From the NCBI GenBank assembly GCA_002104905.1, contig MCFE01000759.1, forward strand, positions 1 through 38,906: a stretch of DNA of 38,906 nt. Reading direction: 5' to 3'. Positions 406-30,900 of the stretch are shown piece after piece. Below the pieces are notes generated by a model. That model saw nothing but the letters and a program-made list of their open reading frames with translations. It searched no databases and was not told the origin of the DNA. The translations under genes were made by a program, and so were the position numbers. Within the stretch, counting starts at the first letter, position 1. Every line of letters begins with the position of its first letter. Source of the DNA: Basidiobolus meristosporus CBS 931.73. Its lineage: Eukaryota > Fungi > Basidiobolomycota.

Positions 406-890
406 GATTATTTTCTTTGATGGCACTCCGCATCATAGCTGTACCTTCATAAGTAAACTGCGTTCATCATATTGTAACATTTGGAGTAAATGCAGAACCT
501 TCAATGAACGATATTTATGATAGGGGATAAGTAAATCCTCGAGTTGATTAATGTCCCGTCGAAACCTCTCAACATTCTTCTATTTGCCAATCGGTTGAAT
601 TCTCAACACCCCATTGTGCCACTTCGAATGACATGGCTCAGCTAAGACCAGATTCACACTGGAGCTAATAAAATCCTACCAAGTTGAGCGGCTGTACTAG
701 CCATGACAAGCCCATAAGTACACCTGACAGTTGGTGGATTTGTTATGAGCGGAGCATGATCGAAGTTGAAAGGTAACCTGACTTGGCTTACTACTTTGAT
801 ACGGGAAAGACTGACAATGTGGGAAAAAGGATGTTTGTGTATCAAGGTACAGCTATGACGCGGAGTGCCATCGGGGAAAAGAAAATAATG

Positions 891-961
891 TGCGCCGTCC
901 GGGAATCGAACCCGGGGCTAAAGCTTGGGAAGCTTCAATTCTACCACTGTACTAACGGCGC
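891..961 (-). tRNA. tRNA-Gly(CCC), copy 2 (intact), convergent with copy 1
   Basis: Exact reverse complement of 335-405; the inverted similarity continues ~45 bp into the 3' flank. Confidence 0.96.
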
Positions 962-1192
962 CTTCACATTGCATGATTCTTGGGCATTTTTTGGCATTCA
1001 CCCCATGCACATCTTCCTTTTCTCTTTCCCAATATTATGGTTACTCTTAGGATCCTACCTTCGCAACCATAGCCTAAAACCCACACTTACTCACAATGTT
1101 GAGTGTTAAAGCCACATACACTCTTGCCTTTTGGTTCACGTGCACTCTTTCGATTTCCTGCCTTTAACCCTTTCTTTTATCCCATCTGGTTA

Positions 1193-1532
1193 GCTATTTG
1201 CTCTGATTGTAGTCATGCTGTATTTGTTGTAGGTCAAGTTATTGCGCTCCTCCCCATCAACAGACACGAAGGCCTAGTTTGTGAGAGTACCGCACCCAAC
1301 TCGATCCTTGAATCTTCAATTTATATACGGCCTAGTGCTTAATCGACGACTTCCTACACGGAACCATCCTCACATAGGTGCTTTTAGATAAATTGTGAAT
1401 AAAATGCGTTGTAAGGAATGGTTGGGATGGATGGGGCCAACATATACTCCATGCGAAATTCCATCACATGTGGGATCACCCATGATTTGGGAGGCGGGAT
1501 TTTTGTGGGCTTCACCCAAATATGTCGATGGA
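1193..1532. repeat. Unclassified 340-bp direct repeat, copy 1
   Basis: Matches 4825-5164 with about 9 substitutions; central ~195 bp identical. Confidence 0.9.
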
Positions 1533-1958
1533 CCCAGAGGTATGGACAGAATCCATGGTCATGAAATATGGCAAGCCAAGATTTTTGCTAGCCGTGGTAA
1601 GGTTTGGATGTGGATTTGTGCAATCGGTCTCTCCTGATAATGGTTCTTTACTCAAGTAGTATGGATACTGCTCTTAGTAGGTAGAATTCACTCTGCACTT
1701 ACATTCCGAACCAACCCAGATTTTTGGTCCGGCTCTAGATGGAATAATCATATTGTCAGAATTGGTTTGTCAGTACATCTATCAACGTATATGAAACATA
1801 TTACGTATCAAAATTGGTTGCCAAGCTTACCTAAGATGTCCTCTAGTGGGCCTCATGAAACATGTAGTGAATGCGCATTCTAAAAATGAAGCTATGGGTA
1901 TACAAATCATTACATCCTTGGAAAATTACCACAGTATTGGTATAAAAAAGAAAAGTTT

Positions 1959-2029
1959 TGCGCCGTCCGGGAATCGAACCCGGGGCTAAAGCTTGGGAAG
2001 CTTCAATTCTACCACTGTACTAACGGCGC
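1959..2029 (-). tRNA. tRNA-Gly(CCC), copy 3 (intact)
   Basis: Identical to copy 1 (reverse complement); T-runs downstream; LTR starts 9 bp upstream. Confidence 0.96.
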
Positions 2030-2038
2030 CTCTATAAT

Positions 2039-2366
2039 TGTTACAGAGTAAAGAGTCACTCGATGTTAAGTGACATCAACGCATACAAAGACGACTTAGT
2101 AGCCAGGGAAAAGCAAATCAAAGACAAATCACCAGACTCACAACAAGGTATAAATACCAAACAAGTAACTAAATAAAAAGGGAGTTTTTGGTTATAGGCA
2201 GAAGAGCGTAGTAGGAACAAATATTAGTTTGAATATATTTCTACAAAGTCACCACCCTAACCTTTTTAAGAGATATTCTTACACTACCCTGTCAAATCTA
2301 CAAGATAACATATAGGTTATCCCTTTTTGTACTCTCTAAAGGACATTACTCTTTAAGTACGTAACA
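2039..2366 (+). mobile_element. LTR, family A (TG...CA), 9 bp upstream of tRNA copy 3
   Basis: TGTTAC...GTAACA termini, TATAAATA and AATAAA; homologs at 2372, 3013, 9782, 18039 and 30215. Confidence 0.9.
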
Positions 2367-2371
2367 GAATT

Positions 2372-2689
2372 TGTTAGTAGGGAGTCAGTTGATGTTAAGT
2401 GACATCAATGCATATAAAGACAACTTAGTAGCCAGGGAAAAGCAAAACCAGACAACTCACCAGACTCACAATAAGGTATAAATACCCATCAAACAATCAA
2501 ATAAAGGGGAAGTTTGGTTAGAAGTAGGTAGAGTGGTAGAAACAAATATTACTTGGAATTTATTTCTACAAGTCACCATCCTATCCTTTTAATAGATATT
2601 CTTACTCTACCCTGTCAAATCTACAAGATAACATACACATTATCCGTTTTTGTACTCTCTAAAGGACATTACTCTTCAAGTACATAACA
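2372..2689 (+). mobile_element. Second family-A LTR in tandem, followed by a putative PBS (TGGGGCTCACAGC at 2694)
   Basis: Homologous to 2039-2366; GAATT on both sides (2367-2371, 2690-2694); gag fragment follows. Confidence 0.88.
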
Positions 2690-2756
2690 GAATTGGGGCT
2701 CACAGCAGGGGTAGTATTAAACAAAAGTAATCTACCTCTCACAAGAAGAACGGGAG

Positions 2757-3012
2757 ATGATCACGCTACAATGGGAACAAAGATTGGCCATGATTAGCAA
2801 TTTCTCCAGATACCAGACCAAGGATCCTTTTGCTTGGCTACGGGAATGTGAAGTTGGTCAAAAGGCAAATCAATGGGATCTAGTAGAACTTCCAATGATG
2901 GCAGGTGCTTATATGAAGGATCTGGCAGCTACTTGGTATGAAGAAAACAAAGGACTTTTGACAGATTGGGAAACCTTTCAGCAAAGATTTAAAGAAAAAT
3001 ACATCACAATGG
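2757..3012 (+). pseudogene. Truncated Ty3/gypsy gag N-terminus
   Basis: DPFAWLRECE...ANQW...TWYEEN...WETFQQRFKEKY aligns with the gag at 25964-26728; cut off by a reverse LTR. Confidence 0.8.
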
Positions 3013-3249
3013 TAAGAATATCTCTTAAAAGATTAGGATGGTGACTTGTAGAAATATATTCAAAGTAATATTTGTTTCTACCGCTCTTCCTACCTCTGAC
3101 CAAGCTTCCCCTTTATTTGATTGTTTGATTGGTATTTATACCTTATTGTGAGTCTGGTGATTTGTCTTGTTTGGCTTTCCCCTGGCTACTAAGTTGTCTT
3201 TGTATGTGTTGATGTCACTTAACATCAAGTAACCCCTTACACTGTAACC
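3013..3249 (-). mobile_element. Partial family-A LTR, reverse orientation
   Basis: Reverse-complement match to most of 2372-2689. Confidence 0.82.
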
Positions 3250-3830
3250 ACATTGAATAAATATAAGCAAGAAAAAGTTGCTAATTTCATTTATTGAGTC
3301 AGGTACAAGAATAATATCAGAGGTAATATAATGAATATATTTGTTGCTCATATCAACCCAACCTCATGAGAAGTCATTCTGGGAAGTAAAAATGATCTTT
3401 GGATTAGGCTGGAGTGATTGCTGTAAATTTTGGGGTTTTCCTAAGCATATTTTACATGTGCTTTTTGCCAAGGCCTAGCAAAGGGGCTTTTGGACAGTTA
3501 ATCAAGTTCTCATTCTGGGCACCTGGCATTTTGGTGAAAAAATATTCATAACAGCAACAATGAAACACAGCTTTGCAATCCCAGTACAATACTGTGAGAG
3601 CTAGGGCCCTGCAGTCAATGCACCTATTTCTTGATTTCTTTTCAATGGCATCTTAGATGTAAATTGAGACCAAAGACCAACTGGTAATATATGGCCATGA
3701 ATAAACACCAGTCTGTTTTGCAACAATAGTTGCTAATAGGTAATGAAGGATTTGTATTCATTTCAACATATTGCAATATTGTTCAAACCAGATGGTGGCT
3801 TAATCAGGTATTATTTGAACAGAGAGTAGG
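3250..3830 (-). pseudogene. Highly degraded retroelement remnants (LTR-I-like piece ~3440-3550; possible RT fragment)
   Basis: 3485-3545 resembles the reverse complement of 11060-11115; minus-strand KKSRNRCIDCRAL resembles the RT motif KKDGxxRxCIDYRAL. Confidence 0.4.
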
Positions 3831-10436: not shown

Positions 10437-13400
10437 TGTTATGATATTCAGGTCTGGTTCTCCCACTTTGCTGGTGTAACAAGACCTGTCTTTATTTTTA
10501 CCACAGGATCTGCTTTTAACACAATTCCCAATTGCTTGCATAGACTATTGTCTCAAGTTTGCCCAACAGTGAGCATATAATGAAGCATTATCACATGGTG
10601 ACATAACTATATATGTTGTGATCATCTGAATGTTTGGGTTGGGTTTCAGACTGATAACATTTTCCCCTTCTTCAGTTGATTCTTCTCCTAAAGGATCTTC
10701 AGCTTTAAAATACCAAATTTTCTTTTCAGGAAATGGTCCCCCTTGAAGGGCTACTTGGTGGACCAACATTATCTGTATTTGCTCATCAAGGTCTACTAGC
10801 TGATATGTTGAAGACAGCATAACTCTTCTAATTGTGAATGGTCCCATCCAGTATGGTTGAAACTTCTTGTGGTCTTCCTTACGCATTAAGACTCTTGTTC
10901 CTATCTCAAATTCTTGACTGCTTGCATTCTTGTCATTGTTGTAAAAATTTGTAATTCCACCTAAATACTCACCTAACTTAGTCACTTAGATCATTACCTT
11001 CAAATCCTAGAGAATACTGACCAAATTCCTTGTTGGGATTTACTTCAAATATTTTCACCAAAATATCAGGTACCCAGAATATGAGAATTAGAAAAGTTGT
11101 CCAAACAGCCCCAAACTTTGCACAGATGTTCTTGAGACCTTCCTAACCCTATTTTACATGTTTGTTATGCCAAGACCATGTAAAAGTATAAATACTACTT
11201 TTACATTCAATAAATCATCAAGTGAAAACCACATAATCTACTTGTTCTCCCAATCACTTCCAATATCTCCAAGACTCTTACAACAGTCATAACATAAGAT
11301 CATTTGCTGGCCTTGGTTTTCAAGTTGCTTTAACACTTCTTCCCTCTTATGATCTAGACTTTCCAATTCTCTAATCTGTCATTCTGTTTCATCATTTTCA
11401 TCATTGAGGTCCCAAAGATCTGGATGCAATGTGTCACCAGGTATCATGGGTTCCCTCCCATAGACAAGATAAAAGGGCAAGTATCCTGTAGCTATGCAAG
11501 ACTGTATTTGACATGCAAATAGTGCTTGCTGTACAAAATCATCCCATTTATGTTGTGCCCCCTGAACATAAATTGTCAACATTTGGCTAAAGAGCCCATT
11601 GAAGTGTTCATTGACCCCATTTGTTCTGGGGTGAAAGGCGGATGTTTTTAAATGTTTGATCCCCTGTAATTCTATGTAGTTCTTCATGATACCCTCAATG
11701 AAGTGTTGTCCTCTATCTGTGAGAATTTCCTCAGTGCATCCAAACTGTAAAGTGTTATCTTATACAGGAAATTGCTACTTCTTTTGCGGTAGCTTTTCTT
11801 ATTGATTTGGCAATTGGCCACTTTGTTGTGTGGTCAATTGCCATTATTATCCCCTTGTTACCTCTCCTAGTGTTGGCAAGTCTTCCAATGAAGTCTAAAC
11901 TCCATCTACTAAATGCTGGGACTTGGGGTAACAATGTAGCAATGCAGCCTGCTGCTTCCTGCTTTTTATTAACTGACAGTTAGGGTAGAATTGTATGGCC
12001 AGTGCAATACTTTCTGCCATATTTGGCCACAGGTTAGCATATACAGACAATACAGAATTTCTTGGTCTTGATATTTTCTGCACAATACTTCTTCATTAGC
12101 TTGGAACTTATCAAGTTCTTATAATACTAACTCATTGACTTCCATAGTTGTTCCTTCAGGGAAGGTCTGATTGCAACAGTACTCCACCTACTGCCCAAGA
12201 TGAGGCATTTGTTGTCAAATAAAAGATTCTTGTGAAATCAGTACTTTTCAATACTGGTGTGTTCAATAAAGCTTGCTTCAACCCTTGGGATGCTACTTTA
12301 CAGTTTGCTTCTGGAATTATTTTTGCCACTACATCATCACTGAATGTAGGTGTACTCCATGAGACATAAGTTTTCTTTTTAGCTAAGACAGTGTTTTAAG
12401 CTGCTAATTTGACATCTTGGCTCTTTGTTGGTTGGATTAATAACTTGAGTTTCTTTACCAATACTTCAGAGATGTAATTATCACTTAATCCAATGTCTAA
12501 AATAACTTTCACTGGTTGACTACTAATTTCCACCAGCCACTGAATTACCGGCTTTATTGGTTCTTCTATTTGCCAATTAAGCTCTTCCACCATGTGTAAG
12601 ATATGTTGTTCTTTTATTGTATTCAACATTTCTTCAGAGTCTTCTACTTCCACTTTGAACAGCTTATCCTTCTTACACTTAGAACATTCATCAAATTGAT
12701 GGCCTTCTTTTTTGCAACACAGATTGTGTTTCATGCAATATTCTTTGGTTTTTTGATCCAAGATACTGTCAATATCCAACAGCAGATTTTTGAAGTGGTT
12801 AGTAGAACTACTAACTGTTCCTTTTTGGACTAACTTAGCAAGTTTATATCTGGCTTGCTTTGTAGCTGTTATTGGTTTAAACTCTGTTACTGATTCTTGT
12901 TTGAATTCCCTCCATGTCTCAATTTCATCTTCATGACCTTCATTAGACCTTCTTAAATACAATCTCCACCACAATAATGCTCTTTGGAGCGGACTTGAAG
13001 CGTATTCAACTTTCTGAGACTGACCAACATTTGTGAACTTCATATACTTCTCAACTTGAAATATCCAAGTGTCCACATTTGATTTTCCTTCATAAGTTTC
13101 AGGCTTTGCCAACTTTACCCAATTAGATTCCGGACTTCCATATGCCTTCAAAATATCTTCTTTTGTAAGCAAATCTTCTTGTGCACTATATTGTGCCTTC
13201 AGCCACTGGTTCTCTTCCTTTAATTCTTGTAATTGCTCTCTTAACAATGCACTTAAGTCTTCACCAGGGCTACTACCTTCAGTACTCTTACTAGTACTCA
13301 TCTTCTCTTCTTTTTCCAGAGGATTTACAATGAATTGTTGCTACCAGATGTTATGATATTCAGGTCCGGTTCTCCTACTTTGCTGGTGTAACAAGGTCTG

Positions 13401-13525
13401 TTTTTATTTTTAGCGCTGGATCTGCTTTTAACACAATTCCCAATTGCTTGCATAGAATATTGTGACATAACTACTTATGTCATGATCATCTGAATGTACT
13501 GTTTGGGTTTCAGACTATTGTAACA
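10437..13525 (-). mobile_element. Internally deleted Ty3/gypsy element (family C): gag, partial PR, RT deleted, RNase H and IN remnants; 11 bp upstream of tRNA copy 5
   Basis: LTRs 10437-10659 and 13349-13525 (the latter with a deletion); PBS TGGTAGCAAC; PPT next to 10660; gag ORF 12396-13301; IN ORFs 11379-11687 and 10545-10935. Confidence 0.88.
10937..11285 (+). mobile_element. Solo LTR (family I) nested in the family-C integrase
   Basis: TGTTGT...ACAACA with 5-bp TSD GTCAT; removing it restores the in-frame QMILCYDKNAS; TATAAATA and AATAAA inside. Confidence 0.85.
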
Positions 13526-13536
13526 AAAATGTAGAG

Positions 13537-13607
13537 GCGCTGTTAGTACAGTGGTAGAATTGAAGCTTCCCAAGCTTTAGCCCTGGGTTCAATTCCCGGA
13601 CAGCGCA
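13537..13607 (+). tRNA. tRNA-Gly(CCC), copy 5 (4 substitutions; function doubtful)
   Basis: All four differences are CpG transitions (GCGCTGT, CCCTGG, TTCAATT, ACAGCGC); the B-box TTCGA is hit. Confidence 0.8.
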
Positions 13608-14173
13608 TCACCTTTTTCATTTAATCAATGGCATTCCTTGAACCATCACACTACCTCCCAAATTTTGGAGCAACTTTAGAATTTCCAGTAGAAGGGAATC
13701 CATGCACTTTTACCATTTCAACGCCTGTTTTCTGTACCATCAAAGTGAAGAGATTTAAATTTATGAATCATCAATCTTCCAAAAACACACTGGACCAATT
13801 GAAATAATAGGTCAAAATGTGTATGTTTGTAATAGAGTAGTAAGTTAAAGAGCAGAGTGGCCTTGGTATTCTGGTAAACTTAAGGATCAACTGAGCACAA
13901 GTTCCATCAGAGCCCTAAAACTAGGAAATATTGCGGAAACCCACAATAATGGCAGAAATCATTCCGAATCTTGAAGGAGCTATGTAATTGACAAGAAAAA
14001 TGAAGTTGGTGTATTTTGAGCACAAACGGGTCAACGCTGAGATCACCCAACTAGGCTTTGATCCACCGGTGATTTTACAGTTTCTCCAAATGTTGTGTTT
14101 TGATGGATATGATATACTCTTGGTTGTACGGTATTCATTTTTGGAGTGCCTGTAAACGGGAGCAAAAGATTGT
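13608..14173. repeat. 566-bp spacer between convergent tRNAs; reverse complement of 27172-27737
   Basis: Same length and near-identical in opposite orientation; differences mostly CpG transitions. Confidence 0.9.
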
Positions 14174-14244
14174 TGCACCGTCCAGGAATCAAACCCGGGG
14201 CTAAAGCTTGGGAAGCTTCAATTCTACCACTGTACTAACGGCGC
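14174..14244 (-). tRNA. tRNA-Gly(CCC), copy 6 (3 substitutions; function doubtful)
   Basis: All three differences are CpG transitions, including the B-box. Confidence 0.8.
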
Positions 14245-14255
14245 CTCTGTATTTG

Positions 14256-17200: not shown

Positions 17201-18032
17201 CAGTATTTCATCTTCCAATATTCCATCAATTTCTAGTAGAATACTTTTGAATTCATTGGTATAGCTGCTAACTATTCCCTTCTTAACTAGCTGTGCCAGT
17301 TTATCTCTAGCATGTTTAGTTGCTGTCACAAGCTTGAATTCTGCCTTCAATTCTTGCTTAAACTGGTTCCACTTTTCAATTTCAACTTCAAGTCCTTCTT
17401 GAACACTCTTCATGTGAGACCTCCACCACAATAGCGCCTGTCCCCTGAACAGACTTGATGCATAATCAACCATTTGCATCTTACTAACATTTGTGAATTT
17501 TAGGTATTTTTCAGCCTGAAAAATCCAAGAATCCACAATTGACTTCCCATCAAATGTATCAGGCTTTGCTAACTTTACATGACCGGATTCCAAACTTCCA
17601 TATGCCTTCAGAATATCTTCTTTAGTAGGCAACTCTTCCTGTGCACTATACTGTGCTTTTAGCCACTGGTTCTCTTCTTTCAATTCTTGCAATTGCTCTC
17701 ACAGCAATGCATTAATGTCTTCACCAGGGCTGCTTCCTTTAGTATTCTTGCTAGTACTCATTTTCTTGTAGTTTGGAGGATTATTTGTTGTTTTGCTGTT
17801 ACCAAATGTTATGAAATCCAGGCCAGTTCCTGTCCTTCTGTTTGGTGTAACAAGGTCTGTCCTTTATTTTAGCATAGGATCTACTTTTTATACATTTCTT
17901 GATCATTTGCATACAACTTGTCTTACTTTAGCCCATCAGTCTTTGATCATCTTTGATGATTTTTGGTGTTGACGCATCTCTATATGCAACAACTTGCTGC
18001 CTGTTCTGGTTGCAATTCAGACTTTCATAACA
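14256..18032 (-). mobile_element. Degenerate Ty3/gypsy element (family D): gag-PR-RT-RNaseH, most of IN deleted; 11 bp upstream of tRNA copy 6
   Basis: 226-bp LTRs at 14256-14481 and 17807-18032 (5 differences); PBS TGGTAACAGC; PPT; ORFs 15905-17692, 14972-15673 and 14466-15044; RT motif YLDN; flanks do not match. Confidence 0.92.
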
Positions 18033-27090: not shown

Positions 27091-27100
27091 AAATATAGAT

Positions 27101-27171
27101 GCGCCGTTAGTACAGTGGTAGAATTGAAGCTTCCCAAGCTTTAGCCCCGGGTTCGATTCCCGGACGGCGCA
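27101..27171 (+). tRNA. tRNA-Gly(CCC), copy 7 (intact)
   Basis: Identical to copy 1. Confidence 0.96.
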
Positions 27172-27737
27172 ATGATCTTTTGCTCCCGTTTACGGGCACT
27201 CCGAAAATGAATACCGTACAACCAAGAGTATATCATGTCCATCAAAACACAACATTTGGAGAAACTGTAAAATCACCAGTGGATCAAAGCCTAGTTGGGT
27301 GATCTCAGCATTGACCCGTTTGTGCTCAAAATACACCAACTTCATTTTTCTTGTCAATTACATAGCTCCTTCAAGATTCGGAATGATTTCTGCTATTATT
27401 GTGGGTTTCCGCAATGTTTCCTAGTTTTAGGGCTCTGATGGAACTTGTGCTCAGTTGATCCTTAAGTTTACCGGAATACCAAGGCCACTCCGCTCTTTAA
27501 CTTACTACTCTATTACTAACATACACATTTCGACCTATTATTTCAATTGGTCCAGTGTGTTTTCGGAAGATTGATGATTCATAAATTTAAATCTCTTCAC
27601 TTTGATGGTACGGAAAACCGGCGTTGAAATGGTACAAGTGCATGGATTCCCTTCTACTGGAAATTCTAAAGTTGCTCCAAAATTTGGGAGGTAGTGTGAC
27701 GGTTTGAGGAATGCCATTGATTAAATGAAAAAGGTGA
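27172..27737. repeat. 566-bp spacer between convergent tRNAs; reverse complement of 13608-14173
   Basis: Direct visual alignment. Confidence 0.9.
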
Positions 27738-27808
27738 TGCGCCGTCCGGGAATCGAACCCGGGGCTAAAGCTTGGGAAGCTTCAATTCTACCACTGTACT
27801 AACGGCGC
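27738..27808 (-). tRNA. tRNA-Gly(CCC), copy 8 (intact)
   Basis: Identical to copy 1 (reverse complement); TTTTT downstream. Confidence 0.96.
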
Positions 27809-27819
27809 CTATGTATTTG

Positions 27820-30212
27820 TGTTGCAAAATTGTTTATTGACGTCAAGTTAGGTGTTCCAAAATTTTCAAGAGTCAAGAGGGTTGTTCTGGGTTTCTGGGC
27901 ATCTGTCCTAACGGTACCTTGAGTTGGTTAATAAATACTGTGTTACTTGGCTGAGGCTTGATCCTAATCTGGCTTGCATGCTAAGCCCTTAATGGGCGAT
28001 ATTGTAACATACCCCCAATCTTGAGAGGATTCTACTTCGTAAGAATCATCCGCAGGATACCAGAACTTGGAGGGCAACGGTTGGTTCTGGTCTAAGCGCG
28101 CTATCTTGAGTTGTTCCTGGTGAACAAGGTCTTTCTTAACTGCTCCTTGTGGAGAGGCCAGCTGAAAAGTATGAAAGGGTCGAGCCTCTTTGATGATGTA
28201 AGGTCCTGTCCAAAGTGGGTCGAATTTCTTGCGCTTGTTGTTCTTTAGTAGTACCCATATTCCTGCTTTGAGTTGTGCATTGTTGACTTTTTCTTCTTGT
28301 CGTTTCTTCATGTTTGTTGCTTGATTTACAAGGTTTCTTGTGGCGTCGAACCTTGCGTGTCCCAATGCATCCAGTTCGCGTCTTCGAAATTCCTCGTAAT
28401 CTTCGTTATTGTCTAGCTTCCATAGGTTGGGTGGTAACGAGTCTCCCGGGATCTTTGGCTCTACTCCGTAGACTAAGTAGAAGGGCGACTTGCCTGTGGC
28501 ATAGTGATTTCGAATTCTGCAGGCAAATAGAGCTTGGTGGATGAACTCGTCCCATTTGTGCGTGGCGCCTTGCACGTATGTGGTTAGTATTTTTCCAAAT
28601 AAGCCGTTAAAACGCTCGTTAGCTCCATTGGTTCTAGGGTGGTATGCGGATGTCTTGAGATGCTTAACTTTCATTTTTTCCAGATAGGAGTTCAGTACTC
28701 TGTCCATGAAATTTGTCCCTCGGTCTGTCAATATTTCTACGGGGCACCCAAATTGCATGAAGATTTCGGTGTAAATAAAGTTGGCTACGGTTGTTGCATA
28801 GGCATTGGGGAGAGCCTTTGCAATACACCATTTGGTGGTGTGTTCGATTGCCGTAAGGATCCATCTGTTTCCTCTTTGTGTTGTGGGTAATTCACCAATA
28901 AAATCGAGGCTCCAACGCGTAAAAGCTGGGACGGGGTTGAGAGGATGTAACGGTGTTACAACTTTGTTCGACGGTTTGGCGAGTTGGCATTGCTGACATG
29001 TTTGAATCGCTTGTGCAATGTCTTTTCGCATTTGTGGCCACCAAGCTCGTCGTTTGATAATGTCATAAGTTCCCTGTGAGCCTAGGTGGCCAAATCCGTT
29101 GTGCATCTTATTGATAGTATCGGCTCGAAATACATGCGGAAGGTATGGTACGGGACCGATGTTTTCTAGATGTCGATACAGTACTTCATCTTCTCCAAAC
29201 GAGAACTTGTGGGCTTTGCTTTTTAGGATATCTTGTATCTCCGTAGGTAGGTCAGCTGGGATGGTACCGGACGACAGGTATTCTGGTAGGTAACTGGGCC
29301 AATCGTGCCGTTGGTCAAGGGTGTTAATAGGTTGCAGGTTGTGGTGTCGTGATAAGGCATCTGCTGTTGTCATGGCTTCAATGAGGGTTTTGGGGTCCCG
29401 GTATTCTACTTCGTGTCGCGTCTGAGGTCGGAGTCCTTGGAGGTAGTATTCTTTCTGCTCGGCGTCTGGCATGTCGGGAATTTCGAGCATTAGCAGACTG
29501 AATTGTTGGTTGTATTCTGTTACTGATTTTGTTTGGTTTAATTTGTACAACTTGTCACGGGCGTTCCGTACGGAGTTGACAGGTATGAATTGTTTACGTA
29601 AGGCCGTGGTGAATTCGTCCCAGGTATTGATACTTGGGAGTATTCTACGACTAATTCCTTGGTTTTGGAGTTTCCACCATAGTGTTGCTTCTTTTCGAAA
29701 AAAGGAGGTTGCGTACTGAATTTTGAATAAGTCAGGGTCATTTGAAAAGGCCAGATATTGCTCCATCTCAAAGATCCAAGTTTCGAGTGTCATGGCTTGC
29801 TTTGTTCCATCAAAAGTGTTTGGTTTTGCTAATTTCAAGGTGTTTCCTACAACTGGTCTGTTCACTGGTTGTGTACTAGATGTAGATAGTCGGAATAATT
29901 GTTTTTCCATCTGATCAATGTATGCTTCCATATCTTCGACCGATTCAAATTTGGGGCGGGACATGTCTGTTGTGCTAATTTCAAGGCTTGGGAGGTGTCA
30001 AGAAGGTAATGTTTGTCGCTGCTACCAGTATGTTACGGAATTGTTTATTGAGGTCAAGTCAGGTGTTCCGGGATTCTCAAGAGTCAAGAGGGTTGTTCTG
30101 GGCCCCTGTCCTAACGGTACCTTGAGTTGGTTAATAAATACTGTGTTACTTGGCTGAGGCTTGATCCTAATCTGGCTTGCATGCTAAGCCCTTAATGGGC
30201 GATATTGTAACA
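27820..30212 (-). mobile_element. 2.4-kb RT-less Gag-integrase LTR element (family G), 11 bp upstream of tRNA copy 8
   Basis: LTRs at 27820-28009 and 30031-30212; PBS TGGTAGCAGCG (30017-30027, initiator-Met type); weak PPT; flanks TTTG/ATTG. Confidence 0.92.
27964..29964 (-). CDS. 666-aa Gag-integrase fusion
   Basis: Open ORF: retrotransposon gag aa 1-~200, ADALSR at aa 201-206, HHCC (HNGFGH...CQQC), DDE (SLDF, LTDRG, NERFN), WTGPY; no PR, RT or RNase H motifs. Confidence 0.9.
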   Translation of the reverse strand: MSRPKFESVEDMEAYIDQMEKQLFRLSTSSTQPVNRPVVGNTLKLAKPNTFDGTKQAMTLETWIFEMEQYLAFSNDPDLFKIQYATSFFRKEATLWWKLQNQGISRRILPSINTWDEFTTALRKQFIPVNSVRNARDKLYKLNQTKSVTEYNQQFSLLMLEIPDMPDAEQKEYYLQGLRPQTRHEVEYRDPKTLIEAMTTADALSRHHNLQPINTLDQRHDWPSYLPEYLSSGTIPADLPTEIQDILKSKAHKFSFGEDEVLYRHLENIGPVPYLPHVFRADTINKMHNGFGHLGSQGTYDIIKRRAWWPQMRKDIAQAIQTCQQCQLAKPSNKVVTPLHPLNPVPAFTRWSLDFIGELPTTQRGNRWILTAIEHTTKWCIAKALPNAYATTVANFIYTEIFMQFGCPVEILTDRGTNFMDRVLNSYLEKMKVKHLKTSAYHPRTNGANERFNGLFGKILTTYVQGATHKWDEFIHQALFACRIRNHYATGKSPFYLVYGVEPKIPGDSLPPNLWKLDNNEDYEEFRRRELDALGHARFDATRNLVNQATNMKKRQEEKVNNAQLKAGIWVLLKNNKRKKFDPLWTGPYIIKEARPFHTFQLASPQGAVKKDLVHQEQLKIARLDQNQPLPSKFWYPADDSYEVESSQDWGYVTISPIKGLACKPD

Positions 30213-30214
30213 AT

Positions 30215-30496
30215 TGCCACCGAGTAAAGAGTCACTCGATGTTAAGTGACATCAAGACGACTCAGTAGCCTGGAAAAAGTAAAAGAGACAAATCACCAGA
30301 CTCACAATAAGGTGTAAATAACAATCAAATAAAGTTCAAGTTTGGTTAGAAGTAGGAAGAGCGGTAGAAACGATTATTACTTTGAATATATTTCTATAAG
30401 TCACCATCCTAACCTTTTAAGAGATATTCTCACACTTCCCCAATCTACGAGATAACATACACGTTATATATTTCCGTACTCTTCGAGTGCGTAACA
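30215..30496 (+). mobile_element. Solo LTR, family A (diverged)
   Basis: GAGTAAAGAGTCACTCGATGTTAAGTGAC start shared with 2039; ends GTAACA. Confidence 0.85.
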
Positions 30497-30499
30497 ATA

Positions 30500-30900
30500 C
30501 CTTGTTGTGGTTAGATCCTTCAAGGCTACAAAGGGGAGAAGATCAAGCGTAACCACTTGAATCGTCAAATAAGAACTGCTTTATTAACTGTGCCTGGCAT
30601 GGTTTATATCATAACCTCTTGTACCTTGTTCTGGGCACTCTGTCCTACATTCCGTGCGATAGTTAATTTTATAGAGACTCGATTCCTGGTAGACCAACTT
30701 TTGTGCTGTACCAACTATTATTGCATGCCATTGTTGTGGTACTAGGGCTTTTCAGCTGTTCAAGCTTCCTGCCATAACAACCAAACCTTCTTTTGGAATC
30801 TTCTTGTATCAATCCCATTGAAATTTATTATACCTTTCATGTCTATTCCCAGCTAGCACTGCCGGGATACTTGCCTTTCGACTACTGCCTTCAGTTTAGG
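30500..30900 (-). pseudogene. Possible very old integrase N-terminal remnant
   Basis: Broken frames give HHCC-like spacing and YLTIQVVTLD, resembling PFDILGLD. Confidence 0.3.

Follow-up and report, generated by a model that had tools for sequence, protein, structure and literature searches.

Introduction

Retrotransposons bounded by long terminal repeats (LTRs) that have lost part of their coding capacity are described in mouse and in plants. In mouse, the IAP I-delta-1 (1Δ1) elements carry an internal deletion that creates an in-frame gag-pol fusion acting in cis, gag and pol being supplied by full-length copies (PMC6466679). In plants, TR-GAG, LARD, BARE-2 and other defective LTR families either retain GAG/PROT or contain remnants of reverse transcriptase (RT), RNase H (RH) and integrase (PMC13570524). 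The stretch of DNA analyzed here, i.e., positions 1 to 38,906 of contig MCFE01000759.1 of Basidiobolus meristosporus CBS 931.73 (38,906 nt, hereafter the window), contains a 2,393-bp LTR-bounded element of the Ty3/Gypsy type (30212..27820, minus strand). Its single open reading frame (ORF) joins a Gag capsid domain, in frame, to a whole integrase; the protease (PR), RT and RNase H are absent. It is likely that this element arose by deletion, is young and low-copy, and owes its intact ORF to chance and to its youth.

The comparison with the known systems leads to the following picture: (i) IAP I-delta-1 is the closest analogue in its possible working, both elements having an internal deletion, an in-frame gag-pol fusion and a non-autonomous (in the present case, presumably so) character. 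However, IAP I-delta-1 is high-copy and demonstrably active, while the window element has about two copies and is known from its sequence alone; moreover its fusion is of the fungal Ty3 type, contains capsid and integrase only and has wholly lost RT. (ii) The plant families and the window element have in common the conservation of LTRs, primer binding site (PBS) and polypurine tract (PPT) together with a partial coding capacity. The plant families keep Gag alone or decayed pol fragments, and none of the categories given in PMC13570524 has an intact capsid-integrase ORF. (iii) The window element resembles yeast Ty3 (Metaviridae) by its Ty3_capsid Gag, its HHCC/DDE/GPY integrase, a putative initiator-type PBS and an insertion a few nucleotides upstream of a tRNA gene. 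The integrase matches the Ty3 Gag-Pol chain of PDB 7q5b (E 2e-21), i.e., there is sequence similarity to the integrase core. Unlike Ty3, the window element has no PR, RT, RNase H or nucleocapsid (NC), and its integrase is just distantly related. In a full-text literature search for gag-integrase retrotransposons, the match concerned the Arabidopsis element AtCOPIA4 only.

Non-autonomous LTR elements that are partly coding reveal which functions are needed in cis and which ones can be borrowed. An intact capsid-integrase fusion in a family that targets tRNA genes would naturally test whether the choice of the target travels with the RNA encoding the integrase.

Organization of the capsid-integrase element

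All the features of the element are on the minus strand. Both LTRs have ends of the TG...CA type and surround the internal region: the 5' LTR (TGTTAC...GTAACA, 182 nt) is localized at 30031..30212 and the 3' LTR (TGTTAC...AACA, 190 nt) at 27820..28009. A PBS-like sequence, TGGTAGCAGCG (30017..30027), starts 3 nt past the 5' LTR. A PPT-like sequence, AAGATTGGGGGTA (28010..28024), recognized by reading the sequence, abuts the 3' LTR on its upstream side; the G-rich GATTGGGGG precedes the 3' LTR as a PPT-like stretch. TGGTAGCAGCG is consistent with the 3' end of an A1:U72 (initiator-type) tRNA; there is no initiator-Met tRNA gene within the window for comparison.

CpG-decayed forms of this PBS occur in neighbouring LTR elements, at 17794-17804 and 13336-13346 (TGGTAACAGCA and TGGTAGCAACA, respectively), the first of them 2 nt past the 5' LTR of its element. 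Judging by these decayed versions, their similarity suggests that several LTR families of the window may prime from one tRNA.

The ORF (29964..27964, 666 aa) fills the interior, and its final 14 codons and stop fall within the 3' LTR. It can be divided into three parts: (i) the Gag part, with a Ty3-type capsid domain (residues 1-200, 29365..29964); (ii) ADALSR, a motif of the RNase H tail, which is the junction itself (residues 201-206, 29347..29364); (iii) the integrase, complete from the DWP of the N-terminal extension to the C-terminal end (27964..29346). In Pfam, Ty3_capsid/Retrotrans_gag are found at residues 44-202 (PF19259, 1.5e-15; PF03732, 6.7e-16). Ty3_capsid is covered at positions 10-168 of 198 and Retrotrans_gag is complete, as in a capsid of the Ty3 type. 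Integrase_H2C2 is found at residues 276-332 and rve at residues 349-443. The HHCC motif corresponds to residues 288-326 (29103..28987), the three residues of the catalytic triad are present, i.e., D354 (28905), D414 (28725) and E450 (28617), and GPY corresponds to residues 587-589 (28206..28198).

On the contrary, the Pfam search of the 666-aa ORF gives no match to PR, RT or RNase H, and no CCHC zinc knuckle was found in this ORF, from which the Gag spacer has also gone. From the Pol order PR-RT-RH-IN only ADALSR and the integrase (IN) remain. In the absence of PR, RT and RH, the element is thus a derivative of Ty3/Gypsy and not an autonomous member. An earlier note, made from the sequence alone, had described an open 666-aa ORF between LTRs, fused in frame at ADALSR, with complete HHCC, DDE and GPY motifs and without PR, RT and RNase H. 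The ORF, the Pfam matches and the inspection of motifs agree with each part of this description.

The element is inserted upstream of a tRNA-Gly(CCC) gene (27738..27808, minus strand), the target transcribed by RNA polymerase III (Pol III), in the same orientation. An 11-nt spacer, CAAATACATAG (27809..27819, minus strand), separates the LTR end from the mature tRNA 5' end. The insertion is therefore at -11 of the tRNA gene, as had been noticed before, and it has the position expected of Pol III start-site targeting. The window contains seven tRNA-Gly(CCC) genes, and an LTR end is found 9-11 nt upstream at all of the five that were inspected. The target duplication is imperfect (CAAT at 30213-30216 vs. 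CAAAT within the spacer 27809-27819); the arithmetic of the spacer with reference to a paralogous tRNA site is compatible with a duplication of 4-5 bp.

Junction and nearest relatives

The two sides of the junction were located by comparison with full-length relatives. On the pol side, BLASTP against the Pol proteins of these relatives (1,146-1,164 aa) aligns residues 201-206 on the VADALSR that closes RNase H, at about residue 710-716. The homology starts at ADALSR and continues to the end of the integrase; the nearest full-length relatives are 44-48% identical across the integrase. On the gag side, the homology to three independent Gags stops at Ala201. In one related Gag the zinc knuckle is localized about 65 residues beyond the equivalent of Ala201. 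Since the homology ends at Ala201 and the knuckle lies further on, the fusion retains the capsid domain but neither the spacer nor NC. The earlier note had proposed a deletion between similar ADA-coding sequences; the related Gags have just the Ala in common at the junction point.

The nearest full-length relatives are found in two JGI metagenome contigs, L001 (221-4632) and L002 (1555-5984). They have a Gag ORF of 311-313 aa and a Pol of 1,160-1,164 aa in a different frame, with an overlap of 7 nt. Such an overlap between different frames implies a programmed frameshift in these relatives. Their identity with the window element is 44-46% for the integrase and 26-28% for Gag. Projected on L001, the missing interval corresponds to 878-3282, i.e., 2,405 nt; three does not divide this length, as must be the case if Pol is to come into the Gag frame. 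In L001 and L002 Gag and Pol are in different frames, so that an in-frame join is roughly a 1-in-3 event.

A closer relative was found in a 2,317-nt contig of run X4, which belongs to another study and has another organism label. This contig is about 95% identical to 28127-29366, and the match ends at 29366, i.e., 2 nt beyond the Ala201 codon; it is then followed by 1,088 nt unlike the window Gag. Neither Gag nor the leader of the window element is covered in X4. The integrase of this contig is dead: it has two stop codons and two frameshifts, caused by deletions of 10 nt and 1 nt. The X4 contig has the appearance that a decayed full-length relative would have, and on that basis would fix the breakpoint on the pol side. 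The deletion proposed earlier as the origin of the fusion gains support from this contig, whose match stops at 29366 and gives way to a sequence different from Gag.

Copies of the element in sequencing runs

The element was looked for in the Logan contigs of public runs, where relatives are reported at at least 85% identity. X1 and X2 are two runs of one sample; X3 belongs to the same study and has another organism label. The junction is spanned by contigs of X1, X2 and X3: one contig of 2,232 nt crosses it in the X1/X2 set, and a 334-nt contig crosses it in X3 with zero differences. The presence of the junction in contigs from three public runs excludes an artefact of the assembly.

The contig depth inside the element is 180-208 vs. 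89-95 in the unique flank (30401-30700). A contig with 107 nt of LTR and 167 nt of interior has a depth of 259, fitting four LTRs and two interiors, and the depth of the LTR contigs gives no excess of solo LTRs. When the contigs are compared with the window, 10 variant sites are found within the ORF; two of these sites coincide with breaks of the X1 contigs, which is what two versions of nearly the same sequence would produce. The depth (about twofold) and the variant sites indicate that the junction is probably present twice in the genome. As the depth is halved outside the element, the second copy would seem to have different flanks.

No full-length parent was found at at least 85% identity in the X1/X2 bins flanking the junction, where the element has its own contig only, the candidate contig of the parent type being confined to X4; contigs, however, cannot prove absence. 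It must be noticed that an extra contig depth (about 1-3 copy equivalents) is observed in both X1 and X2 over 29749-30039 only, i.e., the leader and the first ~70 codons of Gag. Another element of the genome may share this 5' end, and may be the missing relative or a helper.

The integrase core (HPRTNGANERFN, 28585-28681) shows a contig depth of ~9,600 in X1 and ~2,200 in X2 over ~100 nt. This stretch is common to many Ty3-type families of the genome at at least 85% identity and produces loose ends. In X3, a 101-nt «GT..AG skip» (28581-28683) was considered and rejected as an alignment effect: it falls in this very high-copy integrase core and its shorter side is 29 nt. None of the runs containing the element is recorded as RNA; X3 amounts to 27 Mb of contigs and may be RNA or thin DNA.

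Selection, CpG content and LTR divergence

Among the 10 differences between the copies in the ORF, 4 are synonymous and 6 are non-synonymous. Purifying selection between the copies is not detectable from these values, ten sites being too few to decide. No constraint on the fusion is visible. Half of these differences (5 of 10) are at CpG, and the window copy retains the CpG in 5 of 5 cases.

The observed/expected (o/e) ratio of CpG amounts to 0.81 over the whole element and 0.88 within the ORF, to be compared with 0.77-0.90 for host ORFs and 0.05-0.29 for three other LTR elements of the window. The retention of CpGs, noticed before, is therefore confirmed, the values of 0.81-0.88 being host-like.

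No difference exists between the two LTRs in their first 107 nt, to just beyond a TATTTATTAA box; all the differences, i.e., 11 substitutions and an 8-nt slippage indel, fall in the last 75 nt. When the 5' LTR is taken as the starting version and the 3' LTR as the resulting one, 8 of the 11 differences are C>T or G>A, and these include CCC>TTT runs outside CpG. This uneven pattern looks like either a split between U3 and R-U5 or a local deamination. As no difference lies outside this part, LTR divergence was rejected as a clock. The identity of U3 between the LTRs, the retained CpGs and the intact ORF indicate that the element is young.

Origin and status of the element

According to the favoured explanation, the element would derive from an LTR retrotransposon of the Ty3/Gypsy type (Metaviridae), among those which target Pol III start sites for integration. 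A single deletion of ~2.4 kb (a size gauged on the nearest full-length relatives) would have removed the C-terminus of Gag with its spacer and zinc knuckle, PR, RT and nearly all RNase H, and would have put the capsid domain, the ADALSR tail and the whole integrase into one frame. The likeliest cause would be that RT switched templates, or that an illegitimate recombination took place, where a few bases around the Ala codon were shared. Youth and the 1-in-3 chance of an in-frame join, rather than selection, are the simplest explanation of the open frame. The product is presumably non-autonomous. With its LTRs, PBS and PPT, it could in principle be copied by the RT of a helper, provided that it is transcribed.

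Two statements of the earlier note fare less well. It had proposed that the element keeps packaging; this is doubtful, the spacer and the zinc knuckle (NC) part of Gag being deleted. NC normally handles RNA, and the fusion is devoid of it. A helper supplying RT and protease had been assumed, and none is found at at least 85% identity among the contigs of the same organism. As to amplification, none is apparent: the LTR depth fits two elements, with no excess of solo LTRs.

Several observations weigh against a derivative kept open by youth and chance: (i) the ORF is stop-free over 2 kb despite the 11 differences in the last 75 nt of the LTRs; (ii) the host-like CpG content, beside CpG-stripped neighbours, could mean that this copy is unmethylated or expressed; (iii) the copies share the junction, so that a location at different tRNA genes would imply at least one transposition of the deleted form; (iv) the low copy number is taken from Logan depth, which is a rough guide; (v) the presence of RNase H upstream of the breakpoint in X4 is inferred.

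A second explanation, that of the earlier note, is a propagating «minimal» parasite. The functional fusion would enter helper particles via its capsid, would bring its own tRNA-targeting integrase in cis and would borrow RT and PR. The presence of two copies with the same junction is in line with it, as are the intact LTRs, PBS and PPT, the presence of all the integrase motifs, the kept CpGs and a capsid domain complete by Pfam. Moreover, the sequence that follows ADALSR is retained, so that a helper protease might still release the integrase, and IAP I-delta-1 provides a precedent (PMC6466679). However, an element that propagates in this way is difficult to reconcile with about two copies only and no solo-LTR excess, with the loss of NC and the zinc knuckle, and with variants that are non-synonymous in 6 cases and synonymous in 4. 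Neither a helper at at least 85% identity among the contigs of the same organism nor a run recorded as RNA comes to its support. This explanation is thus unlikely, although conceivable. That all its components hold together, i.e., a live semi-autonomous parasite with a transposition to a second tRNA gene after the deletion, an integrase targeting Pol III in cis and a capsid-mediated entry into helper particles, must be regarded as quite unlikely. If it were true, by analogy such a live parasite would be the fungal counterpart of IAP I-delta-1, with RT completely shed.

A third explanation is that the fusion arose in DNA, two elements stacked at one tRNA gene having undergone unequal or illegitimate recombination; the LTRs would then come from different insertions. 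It would account for LTRs that are identical over 107 nt yet have 11 differences and an 8-nt indel in their last 75 nt, as well as for the imperfect target duplication; the stacking of elements in front of these tRNA genes is established (see below). However, a perfectly identical U3 is unexpected from two independent insertions, CAAT/CAAAT still resembles a duplication with a 1-nt slip, and local deamination could account for the 8 of 11 LTR differences in which the 3' LTR has T for C or A for G. Such a recombination is consequently very improbable.

Finally, the long intact ORF and the host-like CpG content might point to a host gene that arose by domestication of a capsid-integrase protein, or to a chimera of the assembly. 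This explanation is largely refuted and hardly tenable, since the locus is not LTR-free (LTRs, PBS, PPT and the insertion at a tRNA site are all there), no homologue of the same architecture exceeds 31% identity, independent contigs cross the junction and the ~95%-identical relative (X4) is a dead copy.

The young deletion derivative remains thus the favoured explanation. The locus is not evidence of a new strategy; it is one clean and datable case, in an early-diverging fungus, of a derivative with an in-frame deletion, and can serve as a marker and in annotation.

Searches for similar fusions in databases

No protein more than 50% identical was found in 5.8 billion clusters or in 1.84 billion representatives. 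In a word-based protein search the best match has 48% identity, and 0 among the 120 matches listed combine Gag and integrase without RT. An exhaustive search of the representatives, with a 302-aa query centred on the junction, gives no close relative but only an independent protein, P0171, and a spliced model, P0201. Overall, these protein searches contain no homologue of the capsid-integrase architecture above 31% identity. The look-up of the exact 666-aa product gives no record, the exact 30-nt junction has 0 matches in metagenome contigs, and megablast of the element against a plasmid collection gives nothing.

P0171 (566 aa) is encoded in assembly GCA_054655295.1, contig BAAHLN010000028.1 (L003, 4001-5701). 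It has contiguous Ty3_capsid, Integrase_H2C2 and rve domains and no PR, RT or RH. Its identity with the window fusion is 28% and its junction is different (there is no ADALSR), i.e., it corresponds to an independent event in another family. The existence of this independent fusion in another eukaryotic assembly means that Gag-integrase fusions arise more than once. In L003, P0171 is followed by a chromodomain ORF. Direct repeats of 269 nt (99% identical, with starts 7.2 kb apart) enclose P0171 together with other content.

Surroundings of the element

The 5' flank of the element is formed by an older, high-copy LTR remnant (30223..30440). The same old LTR ends 9 nt from a paralogous tRNA gene (1959-2029). 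As the old LTR adjoins the paralogous tRNA gene at 9 nt, the capsid-integrase element was inserted between the old LTR and the tRNA gene, i.e., the elements are stacked.

A 737-nt unit, made of a tRNA-Gly gene, a spacer of ~566 nt and an inverted tRNA-Gly gene, is present twice in the window, in inverted orientation and with 95% identity (13518-14254 and 27091-27827).

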